NCBI GenBank assembly: GCA_977016875.1
Contig: CDRNST010000599.1
Span: 1 to 63,871, forward strand
Length of the DNA: 63,871 nucleotides
DNA from: Pavona decussata
Lineage: Eukaryota
Reading direction: 5' to 3'
Under the pieces are notes generated by a model. That model searched no databases. It was not told where the DNA came from and saw only the letters and a list, made by a program, of their open reading frames with translations. Each line of letters begins with the position of its first letter. Within the stretch, counting starts at the first letter, position 1. This document shows, one piece after another, positions 33,345 to 59,986 of the stretch. The translations under genes were made by a program, and so were the position numbers.

Positions 33345-35147
33345 ATGGATCCTGGACATTCTTCTAAATTGCAATCTCATGATGCTGAGGTAAGAGACAA
33401 AAGAATCGAGAAAAGGGGTCTGGGTAAAAGGGTTGCAGGTCACTCTCTCCTCTCTTTCTAAAAAAAGGGCCCTCCAAGAAAGAAACAGACGACTTTGGAG
33501 AAACTTGGTCTAGATGCGGAAAGATTTTATTGTGGACCACTCTCTTCTCTGGGAACCTTTCGAATCCTTTCTAAGAACGAAATTAGAACCACTCTGGAAG
33601 AAGTTATATGTACTTCTCTTTTTCCGATCACTCTTCACCCAACAGGGAAACATACCACTTTATCCTCTGCACTCAACAGATCATTTAGTTCAATTCGTAA
33701 GGAAGTATAGGGGGTGTATAGCCTAAGTAGTAAAGTTAATAATTTTAAAGGGAAGTGTATTAATAAAAATTAATCATACAGCTACAAATTTGGAAGTAAA
33801 AGTGCATCATGATCAACGTAACTTTGTTGTTGAACATGTTACAAACGAAATGATGGAGGATGCTGCTACTATCCTGAAGATTGAGGATTTGATACATCAT
33901 ATTGCTGACATTTGTGCGAAAGCTCAAGTTGACTCGACACAGTCAGGCCATGGTCAGAAGGTTTGTATGTGTGTGTGTTTCTGTCTGTCTCCACGCTAGC
34001 TGCTACATATACATGTACCTTGTTCATAAGTGTCGAGTGAGGAGTTATAACGTTCCTTTTTGGCGTTGAAGACATACATATTGTGTGAGTTTCACTAAAT
34101 GCATTAGACAGAAGACTCACCAACAGTTCTGGACAAGACTGGAAACGATTATGTCAAGTGCATGCTTTAATACAGCTCCGAGGGTCTCATACTTTAGTGT
34201 TCATTATTATCTTAATCTGTGTTTTTTGTTTAAGGAGGACTTTGACGAACTTCTATGGTCAAGTATTTCTTCAGCAGTGTTAGGAAGTAATTCTGTCGTG
34301 TTTACGCAATGTGAAATTGCTGGTGAAACTCTGCCTCATGGTGATGTAGACGTAATTGCTAGTCGGATTGGTGAGGAGAGCAGCATTGACTTCCCTACTG
34401 CTATTGGTATTGTTCTTAGTGAGAGCAACGAAACTGTTCCAGTTGATGATGCCATTGGTATATCAGCAAAGACACGCAATTCATTGCGCACAAAGCCACC
34501 TAGTAAGTTTAAATAAGGAAGTAAGTTAAGTCCCTTTGTTTATCTACTACAAATTTATTTTCTACAGATCCCCAAGCTGTAGTAGAATGCCTTTCATTGT
34601 CTGAGATACAGCAGATCAGAGACAAACCTGTTCTCTTTATTTCAGGTATGTACACAAAATTTAATGAAAATCAGATGGTTTACCATCTGAAGTCTCCAAG
34701 ATTTTTATTCAGGTTGATTGTTTGAGGACATAATGTTATGCAGGCTCCCGGGAGGCATTCAGACCATTCTTGAGAGTACTGGAACTGGATTTAGTTCTCA
34801 CTACTGCAGAGGCCATTAAATTTTGGAACACCAAAGAAAACAAACCACACTTGACGGGTCTTGTTCTACTTATTGTTCTAATGTTGGGAGTGTCTTCATC
34901 TTCAGGAGTGCCATTACAATTAACAAATACACTAATACTTGCGGAGCACAAAGTTTTGCAGTGGCCAAAGACAATGTGGAACTCATATTATGAAAGTAGT
35001 GTAGAAAAGTACAGTAAAAAAATTACGGCAAAGAGAAAGGGAAAACAACCCTCTGAAGTCCCTGAACGTATCACACATTCAGTGACAGTACCTTTAGCCA
35101 TTGTTAAGGAGAAAAAAGTGTATTTAAAACGTTTTGTACCAGAATAA
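33345..35147 (+). CDS. Cassette gene copy 4 (variant B1)
   Basis: Offset +32977 from copy 1 with the same splice sites. Exon 3 reads HVTNEMMEDAATILKIEDL. Confidence 0.75.
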
Positions 35148-35422
35148 CCTGGGAAGCTGTATCATATTCCGCTATACACAAATTATTTCTTATACCACTT
35201 CCATTGTATAATTAAGATTCACTTTGCTATAGAAGTTAAGGTTGACTACAATGGATACGTATCACAAGTATACATTATGCTTGACGCCTATTAGTCTAGT
35301 TTACTTCTAGTACTTCTTATAAACTTCTAGTGCCTCTAACAAAATATAGACTACTATAAGAAGCACTGGAAGTTTATTATAAGTACTAGAAGTTGGCATC
35401 CTAGACAATAATAAATAATAAT

Positions 35423-35469
35423 AAATAATGGACGAAAAGCTCACTGTATCATACAGTGAACTTACTGGT
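35423..35469 (+). ncRNA. 3' half hammerhead of cassette copy 4
   Basis: Same as 2446-2492; predicted cleavage after A35464. Confidence 0.75.
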
Positions 35470-35719
35470 TGCACCACATAAATCGTGTGATACTGAGTGA
35501 GTATAATGGCAATGATGTTCATGCTCTGTCATGATACTCACTCTATGTGATAAAGAAATCATACTGTGTGTGTCTCATAGTATTGCCTTTACGTCATTTG
35601 TTGATAAAGGAGCATGATACCAATGACACAGCAATATAATTATTAACAAATTAGATGATTTCAGACAAGATGACAGAGTCAGAAAGTAAGGCACGGGAAG
35701 ATATTCTGTAGTGTGTAAT

Positions 35720-36338
35720 GACTAGCTCTGTGCCTTCAGTCTGTGGCTGTCGTGGACCGACAAGCCACATTCACAGATACTTCCACCAGGACAAGTAGCA
35801 TGAAGATAGCTCTGTGCCTTCAGTCTGTGGCTGTCATGGACCAACAAGCCACTTTTACACATACTTTCACTGAGATAAGTAGCATGGAGATAGCTCTGTG
35901 CCTTCAGTCTGTGGCTATCGTAGACAGACAAGCCACATTTACAGATACTTCCACCAGGATAAGTAGCATGAAGATAGCTCTGTACCTTCAGTCTGTGGTT
36001 GTCATGGACTGACAAGCCACTTTTACAGATACTTCCACTGAGATAAGTAGCATGGAGGTAGCTCTGTGCCTTCAGTCTGTGGCTGTCATGGATTGACAAG
36101 CCACTTTTACAGATACTTTCACCACAATAAGTTGCATGGTGATGACTCTGTGGCTGTTGTGGATCGTGAAGCCACATTCACAGATACTTCCACCAGGATA
36201 AGTAGCATGGAGATAGCTCTGTACCTTCAGTCTGTGACTGTCGTGGACTGACAAGCCACTTTCACAAGCACTTCCACCAAAATAAGTTGCATGGTGATGG
36301 CTCTGTGGCTGCAGTCTGTAACTGTATGTACCGACAAG
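35720..36338 (-). repeat. 84-bp satellite array, reverse
   Basis: Reverse complement of ~7870-8486. Confidence 0.93.
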
Positions 36339-37194
36339 TGCTAGAAGTCGATTAGAAGTAAATTAGAAGTGCTAGAAGTTGATTAGAAGACCGATGACAT
36401 ATTGACGTACTTAATTGTGTCACGTGACATCACGTGAACAATTAACACCCTCTGTACCTGCTCTGGTGTGTTCTGATCGTCATCAGCTCCCTCGTGTTCA
36501 TTCAGATCGACGTCAGGGATTATGGATTAGTATTACCCACTCAAATCACTTCTAATCTACTCACGTGACTTAATGAATTGGGGTACGGGTTAGAGTATCA
36601 GTGAAAGTGGCTGCTTGTCGGTCCATGACAGCAACAGACTGCACTTCTAATCCACTTGTAAAGTTTTAAAAAAAATTCTAAGAGGCAAGATGCTAATGAA
36701 TCTGTTTAACCATACTGCTACTACGTCAAGTGGGATCATCACACGTAAAAGGAGTGCATACGTATATATATGTATAACGATTGCACGTGACTTACCAGCC
36801 ATACCGGGTTTGATTCTTACTCCCTCCATGCCAGACCTATTAGTGCTATGACTGGATTGGTATTACGAGTGGACTAGAAGTACATTAGAAGTGCTATGAC
36901 TGGAGTGAATTAAAAGTATTACGAGTGGACTACAAGTACATTAGAAGTGCTAGAAGTGGATTAGAAGTATTACAACAACTAGAAGTAGAATAGAAGTACT
37001 ACGAGTGGACTAGAGGTGGTTTAAAAGTGCTACGACTGGAGTACAAGTAAATTAAACTTCACTGAAAACTTTAATGCCAAGCAATATCATAGCAATTAAT
37101 GTATCATACAGCATGAATATCACATCAATAAAGGCATCATTATCTGTAAAGAAAGAAATGGTGAGGTTCTACTCTCACTTATACTTTTGTGTTT

Positions 37195-37790
37195 AAGTGC
37201 AGGCAGAGAGCTACCTCCATGCTACTTTTTCTGGTGGAAGTATCTGTGCTGCAGCTGTCGTGGACCGACAAGCCACTTTCACAGATACTTCCACCAGATT
37301 AAGTAGCATGGAGGTAGCAATGTAGCTGCAGTCCCTGGCTGCCATGGACCGACAAGCCACCTTCACAGATACTTCCACCACAATAAGTAGCATGGAGGTA
37401 GCTCTGTGGCTGCAGTTTGTTGCTATCGTTGACCGACGAGCCACTTTCACAGATACTTCCACCAGAATATGTAGCATGGAGGTAGCTCTGTGGCTGCAGT
37501 TAGTGAAAAAAGTCTGTTGCTGTCGTGGAACAACCAACAACTCTCACAGACAAACAACTTTCACAGATACTTCCACCAGAATAAGTAGCATAGAAATAGT
37601 ACTTTTGCTGCAGTTTGTGGCTGTCATGGACCGACGAGCCACTTTCACGGATACTTCTACCAGAATAAGTAGCATGGAGGTAGCTCTTTGGCTGCAGTCT
37701 GTTGCTGTCGTTGACTGACAAGCCACTTTCACAAATACTTCCACCAGAATAAGTAGCATGGCGGTAGCTCTGTGGCTGCAGTTGTTGCAT
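37195..37790. repeat. Diverged subfamily of the satellite, mostly reverse
   Basis: Keeps ccactttcacagatacttccaccagaataagtagcatggaggtagctctgtggctgcag but lacks the cttcagtc core. Confidence 0.85.
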
Positions 37791-38084
37791 GACATTTTTT
37801 ACATTAGATAAAAAAAGGAAAAAAATCAGTAAGCAGAATAAAATTTAATAGGAAAATAGTTGAATTTCATTGTATTTTGCAGAGAAAATATTAACCTTTT
37901 TAATACTACTTCTTCTTCTTCTACTTCCTCTTCATCTTTTAGACATAAACTTTAAATACGTAATGCAAATAGTACTACTTTACATATATAAACAACTATT
38001 AACCCATATTTATAATACCCTTATGTCTTAAACAAATCTACCACCATTCACACGTTTTCTGGGCTTAGTCTACTAAGTAGATCC

Positions 38085-38785
38085 ACGAGTGGACTAGAAG
38101 TGGATTAGAAAGGACTAGAAGTGGAGTAAAAGTAATTTAAAAGTGCTAGAAGTATTAGAGCTACTTTGACTGGAATAAAAGTGAATTAGAAGTGCTAAGT
38201 GTGGACTAGAAGTGGATTAAAAGTGCCACGAGTGGACTAGAAGTGGATTAGATATACTATGAGAAATAGAAGTAATAATATGTGCTAGAAGAGGATAAGT
38301 TGACTAGAAGTTGATTAGAGGTACTAGAAGTAGACTAGGACTCAAGTGGACTAGAAGTTGATAAGAGGTACTAGAAGTTGAATAAATATATTGGATAAGT
38401 GGACTATAGCCCACTATTTTCTCATAGTATATCTAATCCACTTTTAGCTAACTTCTAGTTCCACTAATCCACTTGTAGCACTTCTAATCTACTTCTAATA
38501 ATATTATTATTATTACTTCTATTTCTCATAGTATATCTAATCCACTTTTAGCTACTAGTTCCACTAATCCACTTGTAGTCCACTTCTAGTCTACTTCTAG
38601 TACTTCTAATCCACTTCTAGTTCACTTCTAATCCCTCTAATCCTATTCTAGTCAACTACTAGTCCACTTCTAGTACCCTCTTATCCTCTTCTAGTCTATT
38701 CAACCTCTAATCCACTTCTAGTCCACTTCTAGTCTACTACATTTCTAATCAACTTCTAGTCCACTTCTGGTACCTCTACTAAACT
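38085..38785. repeat. Fold-back of TAGAAGT/ACTTCTA short repeats
   Basis: tagaagt units to ~38407, then acttcta units; gtggattagatatactatgagaaa (~38242) is reverse-complemented at ~38418. Confidence 0.8.
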
Positions 38786-39071
38786 TAGTGAGGATAGACA
38801 CAGTATGCAGGCATGGGGCTATCATCATACTACTTATTTTTGTGAAAGTTTCTGGAAAAGTGGGTTTTTGGTCTATGACAGACATAGTATGCAGGCATGG
38901 GGCTATCATAATGCTACTTATTATGGTGGAAGTACCTGTACAAGTGGGTTGTTGGTCCACAACAGACACAGCCTGTAGACACGGGGCTATCATCAAGTAT
39001 CTGTAGACACGGGGCTATCATCAAGTAACTTATTCTGATGGAAGTTTCTGTAAAAGTGGGTTTATGGTCCA

Positions 39072-39131
39072 TTTGGGCGCGGGCATGCTCACATTTTGCC
39101 CGCCAAAAAGCATTTTGGCGGTAAAACGCGC
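39072..39131. promoter_or_regulatory. E2F-like sites upstream of PCLAF
   Basis: cccgccaaaa (reverse ttttggcggg), ttttggcggt and tttgggcgcggg ~120-180 bp upstream of the ATG. PCLAF is a known E2F target. Confidence 0.55.
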
Positions 39132-39247
39132 CTTGGCATACTGTACTAAGCGAGGAAAGGTCACCTACACCTACACTGTCCAGGTACACGTTTAGCAGGA
39201 ACTCTTAGGAGAAAAAGTCCTTTCTAATCATTTCAGAAACTTCTAGA

Positions 39248-39735
39248 ATGGTTCGTACCTTAGCAGGCAGTGCTGTCAGAAAAGGTAAGTGTCACGGAGA
39301 GTACCCCGAATCTCGCGCTCGCGGGAAACCTATGCTAGTACACCTAATTTAACTGGCCACTTTCGTTGTTTCACAGCTGTTGCTGCTAAAGCTCCAAGGA
39401 AGAATTTGCCCGCTGCTTGGTCTCCTGGTAGAAATAATAAGAAGAAGGCTAAAGCTGGAAGAGGAAATCCATTTAAAACGTGGCCAACTCCAAAATGGCA
39501 ACAGAACCTTCACACGTTTCTGGGTGTCGAACAGCCTGAGAGTAGCAGCAGTTCGAGCTCTGCTGGTGCTAGTACATCGTCCTACATGACAACAGAAGCT
39601 GAGCTTGCTCCTGGAAGCAGTGGTAGTAGCTGTCAAGACGAATGCCAAGGTTCCTCTTCTAACATGGCTACTGGAATAGAACTATTGAGCGGGGACATCA
39701 CTCAGTTGAACAGTGACAGTGAAGATGATGACTAA
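39248..39735 (+). CDS. PCLAF: PCNA-associated factor (PAF15/KIAA0101), two exons, 131 aa
   Basis: Exons 39248-39284 and 39377-39735 give MVRTLAGSAVRKAVAAKAPRK...GNPFKTWPTPKWQQNLHTFL, matching the MVRT..RK.VAA.APRK, GNP...PTPKWQ and PIP-box signatures. Confidence 0.9.
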
Positions 39736-40854
39736 AACAAACCCTTTCATAGAGTTAAACAGTTATATACGTACAAATGTCTACATCACCATGACCCTAA
39801 AGTATGTGTACATTCACCACTGGAATGTACGTGTTTGCTGTTAGATATTTACCCATAGATAATACATACCCCTGGTTGAATTGTACACAACATTGTCCAA
39901 CATTTTTATATAGCCATGTCCAGCAGACATTTTTTCAATTTCCTATGGGTTGACAATTGAAGGGATTAGGGGTTGTGACGGGTAGAGGGGTGTCAATCAT
40001 CAAGTAACTTATTCTGATGGAAGTTTCTGTAAAAGTGGGTTTATGGTCCACGACAGACACAGCTTGCAGGCACAGGGCTATTGTTATGCCACATATTGTG
40101 GTGGAAGTACATGTAAAAGTCGGTTTTTGGTCCACGACAAACATAGTATGCTACTTATGATGCTGGAAGTATCAGTGAAAGTGGTAGCTACTTATTATCA
40201 TTGACATTCCATGCTGTAAAGCGTGATAATCAATAGAATAAGCTGTAGCTGTAGTGAAAGTCGAGTCAATTTAAGAACTCTTTGCCTAGCAAGCCGCGAG
40301 CCAGGACAATAAAGTTTCAACAAGCCACTCGCCCACCACATGCTGCGCATGCGCGCGCGGGGTAATCATTATCTTAGGGTGTAATGCTACTGCACGTGAT
40401 GCACAATGAATGACGTCATTTGAACGGCGTCAGCTCCCTCTCTTCCTTGTCGTCCTCGGTAAGTGAGTAAAGAATAATGGGTGACCACCAAATACTCTAA
40501 GCTAGAGGAGTGCTTCGATTAAATAGGCACAGGGGTTAGGGTTAGGCACATTACGATAAGCGCTTTTAGTGGTTAACTAATGGGCCAAGACAGTTAAAGA
40601 GGATAAAGAAGTCGCGTGACCGTATGAAGGGTGGTCGAAAGGTGAAAATTGAGCATGAGTGGGCCAGAGGTCAGCAGATTTCAGAACACTCCCGTACACA
40701 ATGGGTGAAAGGCATGCAACATTGAAAGCTGGGAGTGGTCTGGCGAGCGAGGCTATTACTGACCCTACACCTCACTTGTATAAACAAGAATGTCGTTTAT
40801 AGGTGTGACTATTTAAGATACAAGAAGACTTTATAGACACACTCTGGACAAAGT

Positions 40855-40878
40855 CTAACCCTAACCCTAACCCTAACC
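40855..40878 (-). repeat. Interstitial (TTAGGG)n-type tract
   Basis: ctaaccctaaccctaaccctaacc; shorter tracts at ~18209, 28496, 28645, 32943 and 40533. Confidence 0.8.
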
Positions 40879-41642
40879 ACCAACCAAGAAGAGGAGAGTA
40901 ATGGCATCGGGAGGATCATCCACAGCAGCTACGTCAGGAGGTCCATCCACATCAGTTACCAACATTACTGGTACAATATACATGTACTCTAATCCCATGA
41001 AATACGAGTGTGCCCATGAATTAGTGTGTGTAGTTCGTGGGCTATAAACCTATTGGTACCTGTAGGCGTTAGTCACATCTTGTAACTGAACTGTAGCTAA
41101 CAAGTTGCACTCAAATTCATGTGATTACCTATACAAATCTAGATATACCAAAGAAACGCAAAGTCTATGCCCTTAATGAGACACAGTGTGAAGGTAATTC
41201 ATTGTGTATGGCAGAGTAATGTAATGCTGATCAACTTTTAATTGTATACTACAGTTTCTCTGCCAAAGACAAAACCAATGTGAGTGGATTTACATTTCAT
41301 CATTATTTGTCCATGATACTCACTCTATGTGATACAGATAACTCGTGCTGTGTGCTTTATTGCTATGATACTCGTGCTGTATGCTATAGATATCATTGGG
41401 ATTGCTATGATACTCACGCTGATACACATGGCATTATTTTTTTCCATGATACCGATACCTATTACTATGATACTCATACTGTTATGAATGAGTATCATAG
41501 CAATGAACCAACCCACTGATGAGTTTGAATCCCAGCTTGCCACTTTTTTCCAAAAGTATCAACATACTATATATAATGTATAGCCATTCATGCTCTTGTA
41601 TCATAGTGTCAATCTTTCATTTACAGAGCCTTATTTTATCTT

Positions 41643-42656
41643 GTGAATACCAGGACACCAATTAGACTGCAGATTTATGAGGAGGCTCTACATCCACCAC
41701 TGAGGGATCAGTATGATGTTTGTGATTTGTGTGAGAAACTAGAGCCCCCTATTAACTCAGCAGGATCATATCATATCGTTTTAGGCCGACCCTCAGTGTA
41801 TATGTACACGTTTACAAAGACTAAACCGGCAAGCCAAGCAAAACTGAGTGACTTTTTAGGAAAACATCTCTCTCTTACGAGTGACGAGATTTTGCCGCCA
41901 AGTCAAGCAGTCACACGGATAAGGTTCAACCTCAAGGCATTCCGTCTCTACGACAAAGATTATGTAGTAGGTTTGCTTAAATGTTGGAAACAACTAACTG
42001 ACCTGCTAGAGAAAAAAGAACCCCCACCTCCTCCATTAGTGGCTGAAATGAACCATTATGCTCGTGAATTGGAAATTTTCACTGGAGAAGAACAAGTAAA
42101 CGAACAGCAAGAGGTTGCGATAAGTGCAAAGTTTGCCAACCTTTTGCAGACATCAATATTCCCAAAAAATGAGTTTAAAGTTAACTCCTTTTCTAAAGAG
42201 ACGCCCCTTAAAATATGTAGATACGCTATGTCCCATCAGGATATTACAATATATAACATAAAGAAATATATCCAGAATGGATCTGCTAGAGCTGCTGTTC
42301 TGGTCTCACCTGATGGTGATGAAGAAATGGAAACAGATGAAACTGAGGATGAATTCACTATTACAGGAGGTACATTAGAGTCTAAGCTTGCACTGCCGAC
42401 AGAACACAAGGATTTGGGGCAATTAGTGGCAGAAATGGAGAAATTGGGTGCTGACTTGTGTGTAAAAGGTATAAAGGCTGGGAATGTACTTATACAGAAG
42501 ATTATTATCTTTGGAGTGTTGCTTAACATAGAAGGAGGTGTAGCAAAACCTGCATCCTTAGAAATTTGCTTCAATGAGGGAGCTACACTAAAAGTAGGTC
42601 TTGATTACATTGACATTAGTGAGTGCTTGTATAGAGTACGTAATAAACTCAGTTAG
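41643..42656 (+). CDS. Intronless ORF, putative Crinkler-type PD-(D/E)xK restriction-endonuclease-fold protein
   Basis: 337-codon ORF with E-helix (QQEVAIS), SHQDITIY, LESK, GQLVAEM and IIFGVLL in the order typical of CR-REase domains. True start uncertain (possible splice acceptor at ~41626). Confidence 0.65.
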   Translation: MNTRTPIRLQIYEEALHPPLRDQYDVCDLCEKLEPPINSAGSYHIVLGRPSVYMYTFTKTKPASQAKLSDFLGKHLSLTSDEILPPSQAVTRIRFNLKAFRLYDKDYVVGLLKCWKQLTDLLEKKEPPPPPLVAEMNHYARELEIFTGEEQVNEQQEVAISAKFANLLQTSIFPKNEFKVNSFSKETPLKICRYAMSHQDITIYNIKKYIQNGSARAAVLVSPDGDEEMETDETEDEFTITGGTLESKLALPTEHKDLGQLVAEMEKLGADLCVKGIKAGNVLIQKIIIFGVLLNIEGGVAKPASLEICFNEGATLKVGLDYIDISECLYRVRNKLS

Positions 42657-46611: not shown

Positions 46612-49600
46612 GACACTTCCACCAGAATAAGTAGCATGGAGGTAGTTCAGTCTGTGGCTGTCGTGGACCGACAAGCCACATTCACAGATACTTCCACCAG
46701 GACAAGTAGCATGAAGATAGCTCTGTGCCTTCAGTCTGTGGCTGTCATGGACCAACAAGCCACTTTTACACATACTTCCACCAAAATAAGTACCTTCAGT
46801 CTGTGGTTGTCATGGACAGACAAGCCACTTTTACAGATACTTCCACTGAGATAAGTAGCATGGAAATAGCTCTGTGTCTTTAGTCTGTGACTGTTGTGGA
46901 CTGACAAGCCACTTTCACAAGTACTTCCACCACAGTAAGTTGCATGGTGATGGCTCTATGGCTGCAGTCTGTGACTGAGTGAACCGATAATGGAAATAGC
47001 TCTGTGCCTTTAGTCTGTGAGTAGCATGGAGGTAGCTCTGTGCCTTCAGTCTGTGGCTGTCGTGGACCGACAAGCCACATTCACAGATACTTCCACCAGG
47101 ACAAGTAGCATGAAGATAGCTCTGTGCCTTCAGTCTGTGGCTGTCATGGACCAACAAGCCACTTTTACACATACTTTCACTGAGATAAGTAGCATGGAGA
47201 TAGCTCTGTGCCTTCAGTCTGTGGCTATCGTAGACCGACAAGCCACATTTACAGATACTTCCACCAGGATAAGTAGCATGGAGATAGCTCTGTACCTTCA
47301 GTCTGTGGTTGTCATGGACAGACAAGCCACTTTTACAGATACTTCCACTGAGATAAGTAGCATGGGAATAGCTCTGTGCCTTTAGTCTGTGACTGTTGTG
47401 GACTGACAAGCCACTTTCACAAGTACTTCCACCACAGTAAGTTGCATGGTGATGGCTCTATGGCTGCAGTCTGTGACTGAGTGAACCGACAAACCACATT
47501 CACAGATACTTCCACCAGGATAAGTAGCATGGAGATAGCTCTGTACCTTCAGTCTGTGGTTGTCATGGACAGACAAGCCACTTTTACAGATACTTCCACT
47601 GAGATAAGTAGCATGGAAATAGCTCTGTGTCTTTAGTCTGTGACTGTTGTGGACTGACAAGCCACTTTCACAAGTACTTCCACCACAGTAAGTTGCATGG
47701 TGATGGCTCTATGGCTGCAGTCTGTGACTGAGTGAACCGACAAACCACATTCACAGATACTTCCACCAGAATAAGTAGCTCTGTGCTGCAGTCTGTGGAC
47801 CAACAAGCCACTTTCACAAATGCTTCCACCAGAATAAGTATCTTCCTGGACCGACGAGCCACTTACACAGATACTTCCACCAGAATAAGTAGCATGGAGA
47901 TAGCTCTGTTCCTTCAGTCTGTGGCTATCGTGGACCGACAAGCCACTTTTACGGACACTTCCACCAGAATAAGTAGCATGGAGATAGCTCTGTGCCTTCA
48001 GTCTGTGGCTGTCGTAAACCGACAAGCTACATTCACAGATACTTCCACCAGGATAAGTCGCATGGAGATAGCTCTGTGCCTTCAGTCTGTGGCTGTCATG
48101 GACCAACAAGCCCCTTTTACTAGCACTATAATTTACACTGTCGTGGACTGACAAGCCACTTTCACAAGCACTTCCACCACAATAAGTTGCATGGTGATGG
48201 CTCTGTGGCTGCAGTCTGTAACTGTATGGACCGACAAGCCACTTACACAGACACTTCCACCAAAATAAGTAGCTTGGAGGTAACTCTGTTCCTTCAGTCT
48301 GTGGTTGTTGTGGACTGGCAAGCCACTTTCACAGATACTTCCACCAGAATAAGTAGCATGGAGATAGCTCTGTGCCTTCAGTCTGTGGCTGTCGTGGACA
48401 GACAAGCCACTTTTACAGATACTTCCACTGAGATAAATGGAAATAGCTCTGTGCCTTTAGTCTGTGACTGTTGTGGACTGACAAGCCACTTTCACAAGTA
48501 CTTCCACCACAGTAAGTTGCATGGTGATGGCTCTATGGCTGCAGTCTGTGACTGAGTGAACCGACAAACCACATTCACAGATACTTCCACCAGAATAAGT
48601 AGCTCTGTGCTGCAGTCTGTGGACCAACAAGCCACTTTCACAAATACTTCCACCAGAATAAGTATCTTCCTGGACCGACGAGCCACTTACACAGATACTT
48701 CCACCAGAATAAGTTGCATGGAGATAGCTCTGTTCCTTCAGTCTGTGGCTATCGTGGACCGACAAGCCACTTTTACGGACACTTCCACCAGAATAAGTAG
48801 CATGGAGGTAGTTCAGTCTGTGGCTGTCGTGGACCGACAAGCCACATTCACAGATACTTCCACCAGGACAAGTAGCATGAAGATAGCTCTGTGCCTTCAG
48901 TCTGTGGCTGTCATGGACCAACAAGCCACTTTTACACATACTTTCACTGAGATAAGTAGCATGGAGATAGCTCTGTGCCTTCAGTCTGTGGCTATCGTAG
49001 ACCGACAAGCCACATTTACAGATACTTCCACCAGGATAAGTAGCATGGAGATAGCTCTGTACCTTCAGTCTGTGGATGTCATGGACAGACAAGCCACTTT
49101 TACAGATACTTCCACTGAGATAAGTAGCACCAGAATAAGTATCTTCCTGGACCGACGAGCCACTTACACAGATACTTCCACCAGAATAAGTAGCATGGAG
49201 ATAGCTCTGTTCCTTCAGTCTGTGGCTATCGTGGACCGACAAGCCACTTTTACGGACACTTCCACCAGAATAAGTAGCATGGAGGTAGCTCTGTGCCTTC
49301 AGTTTGTGGCTGTCGTGAACCGACAAGCTACATTCACAGATACTTCCACCAGGATAAGTAGTATGGAGATAGCTCTGTGCCTTCAGTCTGTGGCTGTCAT
49401 GGACCAACAAGCCACTTTCACTAGCACTTCCACCACAATAATTTACATGGTGATGGCTCTGTGGCTGCAGTCTGTAACTGTATGGACCGACAAACCACTT
49501 ACACAGATACTTCCACCAGAATAAGTAGCATAGAGATATAGCTCTGTGCCTTCAGTCTGTGGTTGTCGTGAACCGACAAGCTACATTCATAGATACTTCC

Positions 49601-55959: not shown

Positions 55960-58900
55960 GTGTGATTAGAGGTGTAGCCATCTACTTTGTTATGTTTAAA
56001 AAGAGGCTTCATGCCAAGGTCTGGCATCCACAAAACCCTGTCTCTGAGAACAATGATGCCTCGACTTCTAAGAGTTCTAAGAGGCGTGCGGTCATTGGAA
56101 CAGCAACCTCCAGTCTCCAGTATGTGCATACAACTTTCTAATGTATAGCCATTCGTTCAGATTTCACACTAGACATCATGTACATAGTCTTTCATTACGG
56201 CAGACCTTGCCGGCAAGAATTAGTATGTTAAGGGTGCTGCACCACCGCCCACGCCTAGCAACCACTACAACACAAAGGAATGTGCTGTCTTGTAAAGTTC
56301 TACAGTACTACAAGACTACAACCCACAACAACACCACAAACCACGAATATTAATGATATTCATTGCCTTCTAGCGTAATGCACATGCGCATATGTGGTAG
56401 AATGTGCAATTATGAGCCTTGTGGCTACAAGTTACTTCCTAGCTGCATTCTTTATGCATATTTCGATAAAACTCGATCCACGATCTTCAGAATGGAACCA
56501 AATTTAGAATGTAGCTTCCTGGTTGCATGCTCTAGACCGTAACGGAGAGTTTTTTCCAATTACATAGGCCCTTCATGCAGAACTAATGATGTCATACCTG
56601 AAAATTTGAACTTCCAGGAATTCCCTTTGCAGCACTAGCAAAAGCTCTCCGTTAATGCATTGTCCTTGTTGATATGTGCATGCAGCCAAAGTTTGAGCTT
56701 CTAAAAACAAAGCCAAGGTGAGTTTTATCGCTTTGAAGGTTGTAGCTTGCAGCATCTATAGTACTAGCTTCTTTATTCTTGAAGCAGTAGGGGTTGGTTT
56801 ATAAACTAAACTCCCCAAGGCCTTCAGACTGGTGCTTGTTTCATTGACATAGCTTCTGTAGTTTCAGAGATATGGTCCTTAGCAACCCCTCCAAAAATGT
56901 GCGTGGGCGGTGGTGCAGCACCCAGCCATGTCCCCTGACTTGACCTCCTGCACGCACTATATATGCTGGCATGAATTTGAGTAAATGACAACTTTGCATG
57001 AGCAGAGTGAAATAAATGTATACTGATATATGTAATAGCATCAGTGGCACAATGTCGTGGGGCGACTTGATACTTTGTGCCGCCTGACTCTGTTGTGGAT
57101 ATTGCAGTTGTGTTGTAGCAATTCCGAGTATACTTTGATCATGCATGTAAGTGTATTCAGAAACTATGTATTCAATCTCTCCCTTTCTTTCTCCCTCCCT
57201 TCCCCTTTCTCACACATGCCTCCTACTCATAGATGTGATGGTTCTAAAGAGTTTATGAATAAGGGAGCCAAAAAGGCAAAGATGAACAACAGTGACCCGC
57301 AGATCGAATATGTTCCGGTCGATGGCCGCTACGAACTGATCCATGATTCCCGCCAATGGAACCCCGCCCACCACGAAGCCTTTAGAAATCCCAGACAAGT
57401 GCTCAGCCTTCTTCGAGGCTACAAGCATCAGCACGGTGAGAACCTTGATGTAAATGCCGCTGGTCCAGGAGGATTCACGCCGCTCATGCTGGTTGTGATG
57501 AAGCGTCACGGTAGCCACGATAGCATTCCCTACAACTCGCGCACTAGCTCGGTGTCCAGCGAACACCAAGTGTTTGCCGCCCCCTACTGTAATCCCTACC
57601 ACGACAGGATGGCCCTGATGAATGGTGCAGCTACGGGAGGACGACCTATCTCCAACGGGTCGATGCTTAGTCACGATGGCTGCTTCTACACTCCCCACGG
57701 TTTCATCCCACCGATTGAGAGCTCTGTGACGGCCCTGCTCAAGGCCAACGTTGATCCCAACGCCACCAACGACTTCGGTCAAACTGCTCTCCACCTTGCA
57801 GCTGTTTGCTCACGAGCTGACTACGTTGAACAGCTACTTGAAGCCGGGGCAAATCCGAACATTGGAGATAACTGGGGTCAGAGTCCACTTGAGGTTGCCA
57901 TTGGAGCTGGTGCTGAAGGTCCATTTATGGTAAGACATGCTTGACTATGCATCCACAAATTAATACATGCATAATGCATGCTATGCACATGAGTGTATGT
58001 GTGGTAAATACAGGAGCGTAGTCGTAGCTAGTATACCTGAGAGGGGAGGTCTATTGGGATCTAATGTAATGATTACAGCAGTTGTTTCGAGTTGCCAGGT
58101 CACAGTGGTGCTTCGTAAGTCTAGTAGTGAAATCACTTGGCCATCAAATTTGTTGGCATCATCGGGCATAACATATAATGTTATCTTTACATGTCCACAT
58201 TTCCTTTCCGTTCAGATTCTTATCAACCACCCCAAGACAGATCTGAACCTCAAGTCGGATGGTGGCATTACTCCCCTGATGGCTGCTGTCAAGGTTGCCA
58301 ACCAGTACATGCTCAAGCTCCTCATCAAGAAGAATGCTGATATAGCGGCTTCTGACAACGATGGCCGTACTGCCCTCCACTGGGCAGCTATGTTGGGCAA
58401 TCTGCAGGCTCTAAAATTGATTATCAGATGCGGACCCGAAATGATCAAAGATGCTCGAGATCACAAGGTCTGTTTTGTTTCAATCTCTCTTTCACTCCTC
58501 TCTTTCGATTTCCTCGGCCCTCCCTTCCTCTCTCTCCCACCACATTTTCTTCTTTCGGTCTTTTCTTCCTTCCTCTCTCAGCTCCTCCCTCTTATTCTGC
58601 ATGCATAGCTACCTCATACAACACTCATCCACAACCTAACCCACCAATTGACTATAATGATTATGTTTGTGTACACACACATGCACCTCACAGGACCAGA
58701 CTGCGCTTTTCCTTGCTTGCCGTGAGGGTTACTTCGGTTGTGTGAAGCACCTCATAGACTGTTTTGCCAATGCTACCCTACTGGACAACCTGGACCAATC
58801 TCCAATACTAATAGCCACGCAGAAACAACATCACGATATTGCTGCCCTCCTTCAGACGCAGGGTCCCATCTCCTACCCTCCACTGGTCAATATTCCATAT

Positions 58901-59986
58901 TATAGACTTCCGGGGGGTCAACTCGAGCAGGAGCCAGTGTACTCGTACCCAGTTTTGAGCAGACCTCTGATAAAGCCATTAAAGTCAAAGTCCCCTCAGG
59001 AGCATCGTAACATCACTGACCATCCCGCTGGCCACTCCCATCTCTCATTTGCACAAAAGCCAAACTTTGGTGGTGCTGAGACGGCATCCCTGGTTGACAG
59101 TATGGCCTCTTCCCACCTGACGTTTGGGGATATGGCACATCTTCCAATCTCCACGGATCCATCCTCCATTCCTATGACAACCCATGGTCAGTCCAGCTAT
59201 GCTAACGCTTACTCAAGTGGAACTGCAGCTGCTGTCACTTATGTTTCCCCTGAGACATCGACTGTCCCTCTTCAGCAGCCTGTGGATGGTGGGAGCCCTC
59301 CTATCTGCATGGAAACCAATAGTTTTGTGAACACGCACCCGATGATGGCCGATTATTTGATGTCCAACTCGAAGGAGAGTACCACATCTCCATCGGCAGC
59401 CTGTGTGGTAGTGTCTCAGGCACCGCAGAACTACAATCACCTTGCTAGCTCATCTGCAGTAGTAGCTAGCCCCCCTCAGCAGCAGTTGCCCTCCTATGAA
59501 AGCGAATTCAGTGGTTACAACGTCATGGACCAGCACACCAGTGCTCCTCCCGCGAGTGTCTACAGTAGCAGCACTGGGAGCACAAGAGCTCTACAGCACC
59601 TGCCATACGTTGCCGAAAATTCCATGTCCAACCCAACAACCACAAGAGGAGGAGAACCCCCACTTTTAGTGAGCAGTTATGATGGCTATCACTCCCATAC
59701 CTCTCCACCTCACACGGGGAGTGTGAGCTCGGGGAGTCCACCTTCGGCCTATCCATCCCCTTCGCAGCCAAACAATGAGCTCCATACAAACTACATTCAA
59801 AGCGATGAATACATCTACAGTGTGTCATCACGCACCAGCCCCCCAAGCTTGACTTTCCCATTTGAATCGTGCGAAGACCAGTTGGTCACTGCTCATGGAA
59901 CTTCTCATGTTGACCACACACAAGACTTTTCCTCATACCTCACCGACATTCCAACAGATGGATATGGTAGCATGACCATGATTTGA
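55960..59986 (+). CDS. Notch: Notch receptor, 3' portion (TM end, RAM, ankyrin repeats, PEST-like tail)
   Basis: Exons 55960-56119 (VAIYFVMFKKRLHAKVWHP, RAM WxP motif), 57233-57929 (DVNAAGPGGFTPLM; GQTALHLAAVCSRAD), 58216-58467 (GRTALHWAAM) and 58694-59986 (DQTALFLACREG; S/P-rich tail with YPSPS) splice in phase. No EGF or LNR exons found upstream in the window. Confidence 0.85.

Follow-up and report, generated by a model that had tools for sequence, protein, structure and literature searches.

The 63,871-bp contig CDRNST010000599.1 of Pavona decussata (C599, from the 602-Mb assembly GCA_977016875.1), analysed here over its full length and referred to as the window, carries a compact two-exon gene related to PCLAF/PAF15 (KIAA0101), a PCNA-binding replication factor. 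The gene occupies a 924-bp segment between coordinates 39072 and 39995 on the + strand that comprises a promoter core, the whole PAF-like transcription unit, and 3' flanking DNA, and this segment is enclosed by two identical copies of a 55-bp sequence belonging to an 84-bp tandem repeat. We consider it probable, and hold this view with reasonable rather than strong confidence, that the locus arose by a recent DNA-level insertion of the 924-bp gene segment into one monomer of the tandem repeat, accompanied by duplication of the target.

The segment begins with a promoter core (39072-39135) that is recognizable by ortholog comparison, in which TTTGGG..GCATGC is followed by TTTGCCCGCCAA and TTTGGCGG. 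The E2F-type sites TTTGGCGG form an inverted pair at 39100-39107 (- strand) and 39114-39121 (+ strand), contained within 39095-39126 and positioned 134-148 bp upstream of the ATG, and they are the sole TTTSGCGS matches in the 64-kb window. Exon 1 (39248-39284), read from the DNA and by comparison with orthologs, specifies MVRTLAGSAVRK and the initial base of a split codon, and is followed by a 92-nt phase 1 intron (39285-39376; GTAAGT...CACAG) whose position matches that of intron 1 in canonical PCLAF and of the intron in all of the orthologs read. Exon 2 (39377-39735, including the stop codon) was characterized by Pfam matching and alignment, and contains a KAPRK motif, the sequence GNPFKTWPTPKW, the motif QQNLHTFL resembling a PCNA-interacting protein (PIP) box, a Ser-rich region, and the acidic C-terminus LLSGDITQLNSDSEDDD. 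The remaining sequence (39736-39995) is the 3' untranslated region and flank carried along with the gene, and aligns to the ortholog in the closest relative (L018/L019). The open reading frame (ORF), splice sites, and promoter core are all intact. The outermost bases of the segment are TTTGGG... and ...GGTGTCA, and its last 30 nt (39966-39995) are G-rich and TTAGGG-like.

The window contains exactly two copies of the 55-bp direct repeat, at 39017-39071 and 39996-40050, and the identity extends by not a single base on either side. Both of these coordinates, and the placement of E2F-like sites, two exons, an intron, and a 3' flank between the repeats, had been proposed in a first-pass annotation made from the sequence by a model, and the anatomy that it described is correct. 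The 55-bp sequence is a segment of the degenerate 84-bp tandem repeat. Tandem-repeat and monomer comparisons show that the left part of the array (38796-39071), the presumed insertion target, consists of three monomers about 77-80% alike that start at 38796, 38880, and 38964, and that the same array goes on in phase to the right (40051-40190), with monomers starting at 40055 and 40139. The left 55-bp copy ends 4 nt before the end of its monomer, and the right copy leads into the same 4 nt (CGAC) and then into the next monomer; deletion of 39072-40050 therefore gives back an uninterrupted, in-phase array.

The two copies differ at none of their 55 positions, whereas, of the 268 homologous 55-nt segments in the window, the nearest other one has 11 mismatches. 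By our own arithmetic, the chance identity of two monomers that are about 80% alike is roughly 0.8^55, or ~5e-6, and the comparison shows that a single target monomer segment was duplicated recently, and that the two copies are no pair of ordinary monomers. A second young local duplication is present at the junction, in the form of a perfect 28-bp tandem duplication at 38973-39027 (period 28, 2.0 copies, 100% identity). It lies inside the last left monomer, and overlaps the left 55-bp copy by the first 11 nt of that copy.

The repeat family itself is restricted to this contig. All 112 of the 112 matches to a 31-mer of the 84-bp repeat (at most two mismatches, whole assembly) are on C599, where the family is interspersed with other repeated modules in both orientations. 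It is a locus-specific tandem-repeat family in the assembly and no genome-wide satellite, with further unassembled arrays possible; what had been called a satellite unit is indeed a segment of a tandem-repeat monomer, but the term satellite does not fit at the genome scale. Because 84 is divisible by 3, the arrays keep reading frames open for up to ~320 codons on both strands, as at 48457-49410 and 48556-49524.

Comparison with related loci in other species defines the limits of the segment. The insert is homologous to L018 and L020 from its very first bases, where the window reads TTTGGG(CGCGGG)CATGC and L020 reads TTTGGGCATGC; TTTGGGCATGCGC is the L020 counterpart of TTTGGG..GCATGC in the insert, and L018, L020, L030, and L048 all keep the TTTGCCCGCCAA / TTTGGCGG module. 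At the 3' end the homology extends to the G-rich last 30 nt, which read ATTAGGGGTTGTGACGGGTAGAGGGG in the window and ATTAGTGCCTGTAACCGGGGGGGG in L019. The flanks outside 39072-39995 have no homology to the orthologous loci, and homology ends exactly at the boundaries between the insert and the two 55-bp copies.

In those other genomes the gene has a neighbor. A mitochondrial-carrier (Mito_carr) gene is arranged head-to-head with the PAF-like gene in L018/L019, L020, L030, and L048, at a distance of 191-246 bp from ATG to ATG, and on the contig of homolog P0009 the ORFs called as Mito_carr and PAF are back-to-back, separated by about 250 bp, such that the arrangement is found in five other species. 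Among these, including the closest relative L018, the carrier is 67-83% identical in exon 1 and 90-93% identical in exon 2. The best matches of the carrier exons in the P. decussata genome are only 55-60% identical and correspond to multi-copy paralogs on C152, C266, and C281 that have a different exon split and number at least seven copies (for example, C266:486338-486469 and C152:320291-320419); the assembly yielded no true carrier ortholog. Searching this genome at the DNA level with the 1.48-kb stretch that precedes the L018 gene returned nothing relevant, and a 62-bp match on C118 from the ancestral-neighbor searches leads nowhere. The UPF0515 gene that neighbors L020 has no match here either, which is weak evidence given that the L020 species is distant, and no ancestral neighbor is detectable in the 64-kb window. 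By parsimony, the head-to-head arrangement is ancestral and that in the window derived, and the piece that moved would correspond to the PAF-proximal part of a bidirectional promoter together with the entire transcription unit.

An alternative is that the gene never moved, and that repeats spread on both sides of it, the carrier gene was destroyed, and gene conversion made the flanking 55 bp identical. The gene is single-copy, searches gave no donor locus, the contig shows intense repeat turnover, and there is a weak similarity (8/14) to the left of the right repeat copy, all of which fit such remodeling in place. However, two independent invasions would need to have stopped with their arrays in phase and in one orientation, their overlap would have to equal the converted tract exactly while being bounded on both sides by the limits of gene homology, and no trace of any ancestral neighbor is left in 64 kb. 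We therefore think this explanation unlikely. The possibility raised at the outset, that this is the single syntenic PCLAF locus later invaded by satellite, does not hold; the locus is not syntenic, and it is the single copy of a PCLAF paralog (see below).

The 924-bp segment has one DNA copy in the assembly, a DNA search having returned the window alone, and the only other PAF-family locus in the genome is the canonical gene on contig C239. This answers the question of copy number that accompanied the first-pass annotation. As for the parental PCLAF locus that it also called for, the C239 gene is the canonical PCLAF, of which the window gene is no fresh copy, and the DNA search for a parental copy of this segment yielded only the window itself. 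Searches for an empty site or paralogous flanks gave only 72-80% monomer matches in the window, and the 14 candidate regions scored in the genome are all on C599. No empty satellite site was seen, and the insertion is therefore read from the structure of the locus alone.

Two further data sets bear on whether the structure is real. L029, a contig from a metagenome-type assembly (ENA ERZ25073805), is base-for-base identical to the window from 35136 to 42398, including both repeat copies, and departs from it beyond 34650 and 42398; at 42398 it passes directly into 84-bp repeats, cutting short a 337-aa ORF, and it represents either a haplotype that differs in structure or the same repeats resolved in another way. 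X2, a set of Logan contigs from another sample of the same study, contains one unitig spanning 39042-40025 that is unbranched at the insert ends and stops where the 55-mer becomes ambiguous, and the 55-mer forms its own unitig at approximately double depth. X2 contains no second contig with at least 85% identity to the gene, and in that data set there is neither another context nor a diverged second copy. Mis-assembly that stitched the gene into the repeat might be suspected given that C599 is small, unplaced, and highly repetitive, and that L029 diverges outside 34650-42398. But L029 is identical across both junctions, and short-read unitigs extend over both junctions with the 55-mer at about double depth, such that an assembly artefact is the least credible of the explanations considered.

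The same data bear on a different route, in which an extrachromosomal circle containing the gene and one 55-bp segment integrated by homologous recombination into that monomer, giving a cassette then able to hop within the repeat locus. A single crossover of this type yields an A-insert-A structure with perfect repeats, rearranged repeat modules abound on C599 in either orientation, and L029 holds an alternative arrangement of the same locus. Against it, the 55-nt variant is unique and all other monomers differ from it at 11 or more positions, so that the source of homology would be this very monomer, presupposing that the gene was already there. Moreover, the gene has one copy only, and neither the genome nor run X2 shows it in any other setting. 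Re-integration of a circle, which is the mechanistic core of the earlier idea of a mobile or selfish element, is in our estimation improbable.

Insertion with target duplication, the reading that we prefer, would have proceeded from an ancestral state in which the PAF-like gene lay head-to-head with the mitochondrial-carrier gene and shared with it a bidirectional promoter of ~200-250 bp. In the lineage leading to P. decussata, a 924-bp DNA piece extending from the middle of this promoter to ~260 bp past the stop codon would have been inserted into a monomer of the array, duplicating 55 bp of the target. This could have occurred during break repair or by a replication template switch, in which DNA synthesis switched from the array to the gene unit and, once that had been copied, resumed in the array 55 bp behind where the copying strand had left it, and a 55-nt staggered break that was filled in would generate the same structure. 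Events of this kind may leave small additional duplications behind, and the perfect 28-bp one next to the insert fits that pattern. The original copy and its neighbor would have been lost afterwards. With no differences in 55 positions set against a synonymous divergence (dS) of 0.29 to L018, our arithmetic would date the event to about the most recent fifth of the period over which this lineage has been separate from that of L018, assuming neutrality and no conversion.

Replication-based rearrangement by template switching is a known mode of genome change, described as fork stalling and template switching and microhomology-mediated break-induced replication (FoSTeS/MMBIR). The present locus resembles templated insertions of this type in comprising ~1 kb with promoter and intron, a target duplication, a second small perfect duplication, and no transposon ends; it differs in that its donor can no longer be detected, its duplication is both long and exact, and the segment approximates a minimal functional gene. 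Host gene DNA with its intron and promoter in a repeat-rich setting is also reminiscent of capture by Helitrons or Pack-MULEs, but there are no terminal inverted repeats, no 5'-TC or CTRR-3' ends, no 3' hairpin, and no short fixed-length target duplication, and the segment is a whole, single-copy gene rather than a fragment. No poly(A) is present at the insert, and no inverted repeat joins its two ends. Capture by a transposon, whether an element with terminal inverted repeats or a Helitron, was ruled out on the lack of inverted repeats, the 55-bp duplication, and the single copy.

Processed retrocopies likewise place a single gene in a new position between direct repeats, but here the intron and promoter are retained and poly(A) is missing. 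Because the promoter and intron are present, an mRNA intermediate is excluded, and a retrocopy made by a long interspersed nuclear element (LINE) was ruled out given the retained intron and promoter core and the lack of an A-run, none being seen at 39980-39995. A variant of this idea, already disfavored, is that an unspliced transcript initiated upstream of the promoter core was reverse transcribed and inserted by a LINE with a long target duplication. LINE target duplications do vary in length, and the intron is short enough that its retention is possible. However, neither end has poly(A) or an A-rich tail, the segment includes the promoter core upstream of the likely start site, and its 3' end lies within a G-rich flank that is also present in ortholog genomic DNA, which together make an RNA-mediated copy very unlikely. 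The earlier proposal that the gene was captured holds in so far as it arrived as DNA, judging by its promoter, its intron, the lack of poly(A), and homology that ends at the repeat edges, but a capture of PCLAF itself is not supported.

Several observations weigh against insertion with target duplication. A target duplication of 55 bp is unusually long, and the 14 nt preceding the right 55-bp copy are weakly monomer-like, matching at 8 of 14 positions, which could be the trace of an older and more extensive homology and not of a clean target duplication. The repair mechanism is conjectural. No donor locus was detected in the assembly, which could be because the assembly is incomplete rather than because the locus was lost, and an empty site was seen in no individual or sister species, in runs available as contigs in which the 55-mer is longer than the assembly word and an empty allele is not resolvable. 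L029 and X2 may come from the same project, and would then not be fully independent. The AATAAA of the L018/L019 relative is altered in the 3' region of the window gene, to TAGATATTT. Finally, X9, a presumed RNA run with the same species label, has no contig on the stretch, and an index of 13 runs guessed to be RNA contains next to none of its words. A further run of undetermined kind with the same species label (X6) also contains nothing matching the stretch. The expression of the locus that the first-pass annotation suggested looking for thus gave no signal in X9 or in the 13 runs.

The assignment of the gene to the PAF family is based on searches with exon 2, the 12 codons of exon 1 having been read and compared only. 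Exon 2 matches the Pfam PAF family (PF15715) with 39.7 bits (E 9.4e-10; cut-off 23.4), and scores 39.9 bits in a genome-wide family search. Its GNPFKTWPTPKWQQNLHTFL block (GNP..PTPKWQ) aligns with the PAF15 peptide crystallised on PCNA (6GWS), as does the PIP-like box QQNLHTFL, in which the last aromatic residue of the consensus Q-x-x-[ILM]-x-x-[FY]-[FY] is replaced by Leu; the Q..L..FL pattern is kept throughout the paralog family. The family search of the whole assembly found one better PAF locus, with 48.5 bits, on contig C239, and this is the canonical PCLAF gene (C239:1416852-1419796; L016 7853-7889, L004 1505-1648, and L015 1663-1796). It has three coding exons and the PIP box QKGIGDFF. 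Exon 1, at 1416852, specifies MVRTKADGAGRK plus one base, and is followed by an intron of ~1.7 kb at the same place and in the same phase as that of the window gene. Exon 2 ends at ..PSPKWQK|gt, and exon 3 starts with GIGDFFSKDD.. and runs through to the stop codon, so that the PIP box is split by an intron after WQK, where the window gene has none. Two GGCGGGA (E2F-type) sites lie 116-129 bp upstream of the canonical ATG. Other weak family-search matches (21.9 bits) fall in arrays with a period of ~6 kb and 141-codon ORFs, such as C185:1411845-1518431; these arrays, on C185 and other contigs, are probably histone H3 gene clusters.

The window gene shares with PCLAF/PAF15 the PAF domain, an MVRT.. 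N-terminus, the histone-H3-like KAPRK, the GNP..PTPKWQ block, an E2F-type promoter, and the place and phase of intron 1. It differs in having QQNLHTFL rather than QKGIGDFF, in the lack of a PIP-box intron, and in belonging to a separate, old family in which the Ser-rich region is long and the acidic C-terminus (LLSGDI.QLNSDSEDD) is conserved, and its exon 2 is only ~50% identical to the canonical PCLAF of its own genome. Orthology to canonical PCLAF was ruled out on the missing PIP-box intron and the grouping with a separate family. The gene that had been named PCLAF is a member of the PAF family, and the comparisons indicate that it is this genome's single copy of an old PCLAF/PAF15 paralog.

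At least eight further coral-type assemblies contain this paralog. Exon 2, used in a word-based protein search, matched 15 relatives from other assemblies at identities between 85% and 37%, and 11 aligned relatives have in common AV[AV]AKAPRK at the start of exon 2, the PIP-like Q..L..FL, a Ser-rich middle, and the acidic C-terminus (LLSG)DI.QLNSDSE(D/E)D, which is not found in the canonical protein. Exon 1 (MVRTKAG..) lies 67-95 nt upstream of exon 2, with a phase 1 GT..AG intron, in all of the ortholog loci read (L018/L019, L020, and L030), and the two-exon structure is therefore ancestral to the paralog family; in a distant relative, L049, the frame from exon 1 to exon 2 is uninterrupted, and this is either a transcript or an intronless gene. 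The promoter core is kept in L018, L020, L030, and L048 as TT[TC]G[GA]GCATGCGC, then TTTGCCCGC(C)AA, then TTTGGCG[GC], the last of these lying 89-116 bp upstream. The intron and the E2F-type promoter core, being conserved in orthologs, are ancestral features and no marks of capture; their retention, which had been taken as a sign of capture, shows that the gene arrived as DNA and not through mRNA, but is otherwise uninformative on a recent event.

The ratio of nonsynonymous to synonymous substitution rates in exon 2 (Nei-Gojobori) is 0.20 in comparison with L018 (dS 0.29) and 0.09-0.10 in comparison with L020 and L030, which indicates that the paralog family is under purifying selection. Two differences distinguish the window copy. 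Residue 5 is Leu (TTA, 39260-39262), giving MVRTL, whereas it is Lys (MVRTK) in L018, L020, L030, the canonical gene, and a second organism (organism B) represented by X5, a small run labelled with that other organism's name; the homolog P0015 begins MVRTR. X5 contains pieces of the gene at 98-99% identity, and matches 40288-40535 at 100%. In X5 codon 5 is AAA (39260-39261 read AA) in contrast to TTA in the window, and there are 12 additional in-frame bases after 39420, where the window protein is four residues shorter than that of L018. From these comparisons, the codon 5 Leu and the 12-base loss are two derived changes of the window copy, both in the H3-like N-terminal part. The histone-H3-like (M)VRTK N-terminus and KAPRK are associated with a UHRF1-related role. 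None of the 16 database homologs has a functional name, the sole name given being 'hypothetical protein', and a literature search found no paper on the coral PCLAF paralog or on the 84-bp repeat.

Because the promoter core came along intact, the window gene is probably still an E2F-driven partner of PCNA. The notion that its presence benefits a selfish replicating locus finds no support: the gene is single-copy, it is under purifying selection, it occupies an ordinary genic context in five other species, and no expression signal was detected. We found no functional link between the gene and the repeat. A specific form of this notion, that the 979-bp unit composed of the gene and one 55-bp segment is a recombination-mobile circle cassette within the repeat, with its PCNA-binding factor influencing the replication or amplification of the locus itself, strikes us as highly improbable. 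If the insertion occurred as we propose, the locus would provide a case from nature, resolved to the base pair, in which a complete minimal gene, with its intron, 3' flank, and one half of a bidirectional promoter, was relocated as DNA without a transposon and with a long, exact target duplication; such relocations are usually inferred from lost synteny alone. In addition, the analysis reveals that corals have a conserved PCLAF paralog whose PCNA box is a variant one and whose acidic tail is distinctive.

The surroundings of the insert contain a number of other features. Just to the left of the target array, an 11-mer array, (AGTGGACTAGA)n at 38076-38400, faces its reverse complement, (CTAGTCCACTT)n at 38432-38778, around ~38410, forming a degenerate palindrome. 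To the right, two telomere-like runs, (GGTTAG)2 and (CCCTAA)3-4 at 40534-40546 and 40857-40880, are in opposite orientation about 320 bp apart. The interval 40330-40460 looks like a housekeeping-type promoter (GCGCATGCGCGC, TGACGTCA) and is followed by a splice donor, CCTCG|GTAAGT, at 40459; there is an ATG exon at 40901, and an acceptor precedes the 337-aa ORF at 41643-42656, which has no Pfam match. The features between 40330 and 42656 are probably the next gene downstream of the insert. A scan of the whole window against Rfam at gathering thresholds gave no match, and terminator and promoter scans returned nothing informative. In a Pfam scan of eight window ORFs, four had no match, and the matches were to the PAF-like gene and to three consecutive + strand ORFs at 57057-59986, which contain ankyrin repeats (Pfam Ank_2/Ank).

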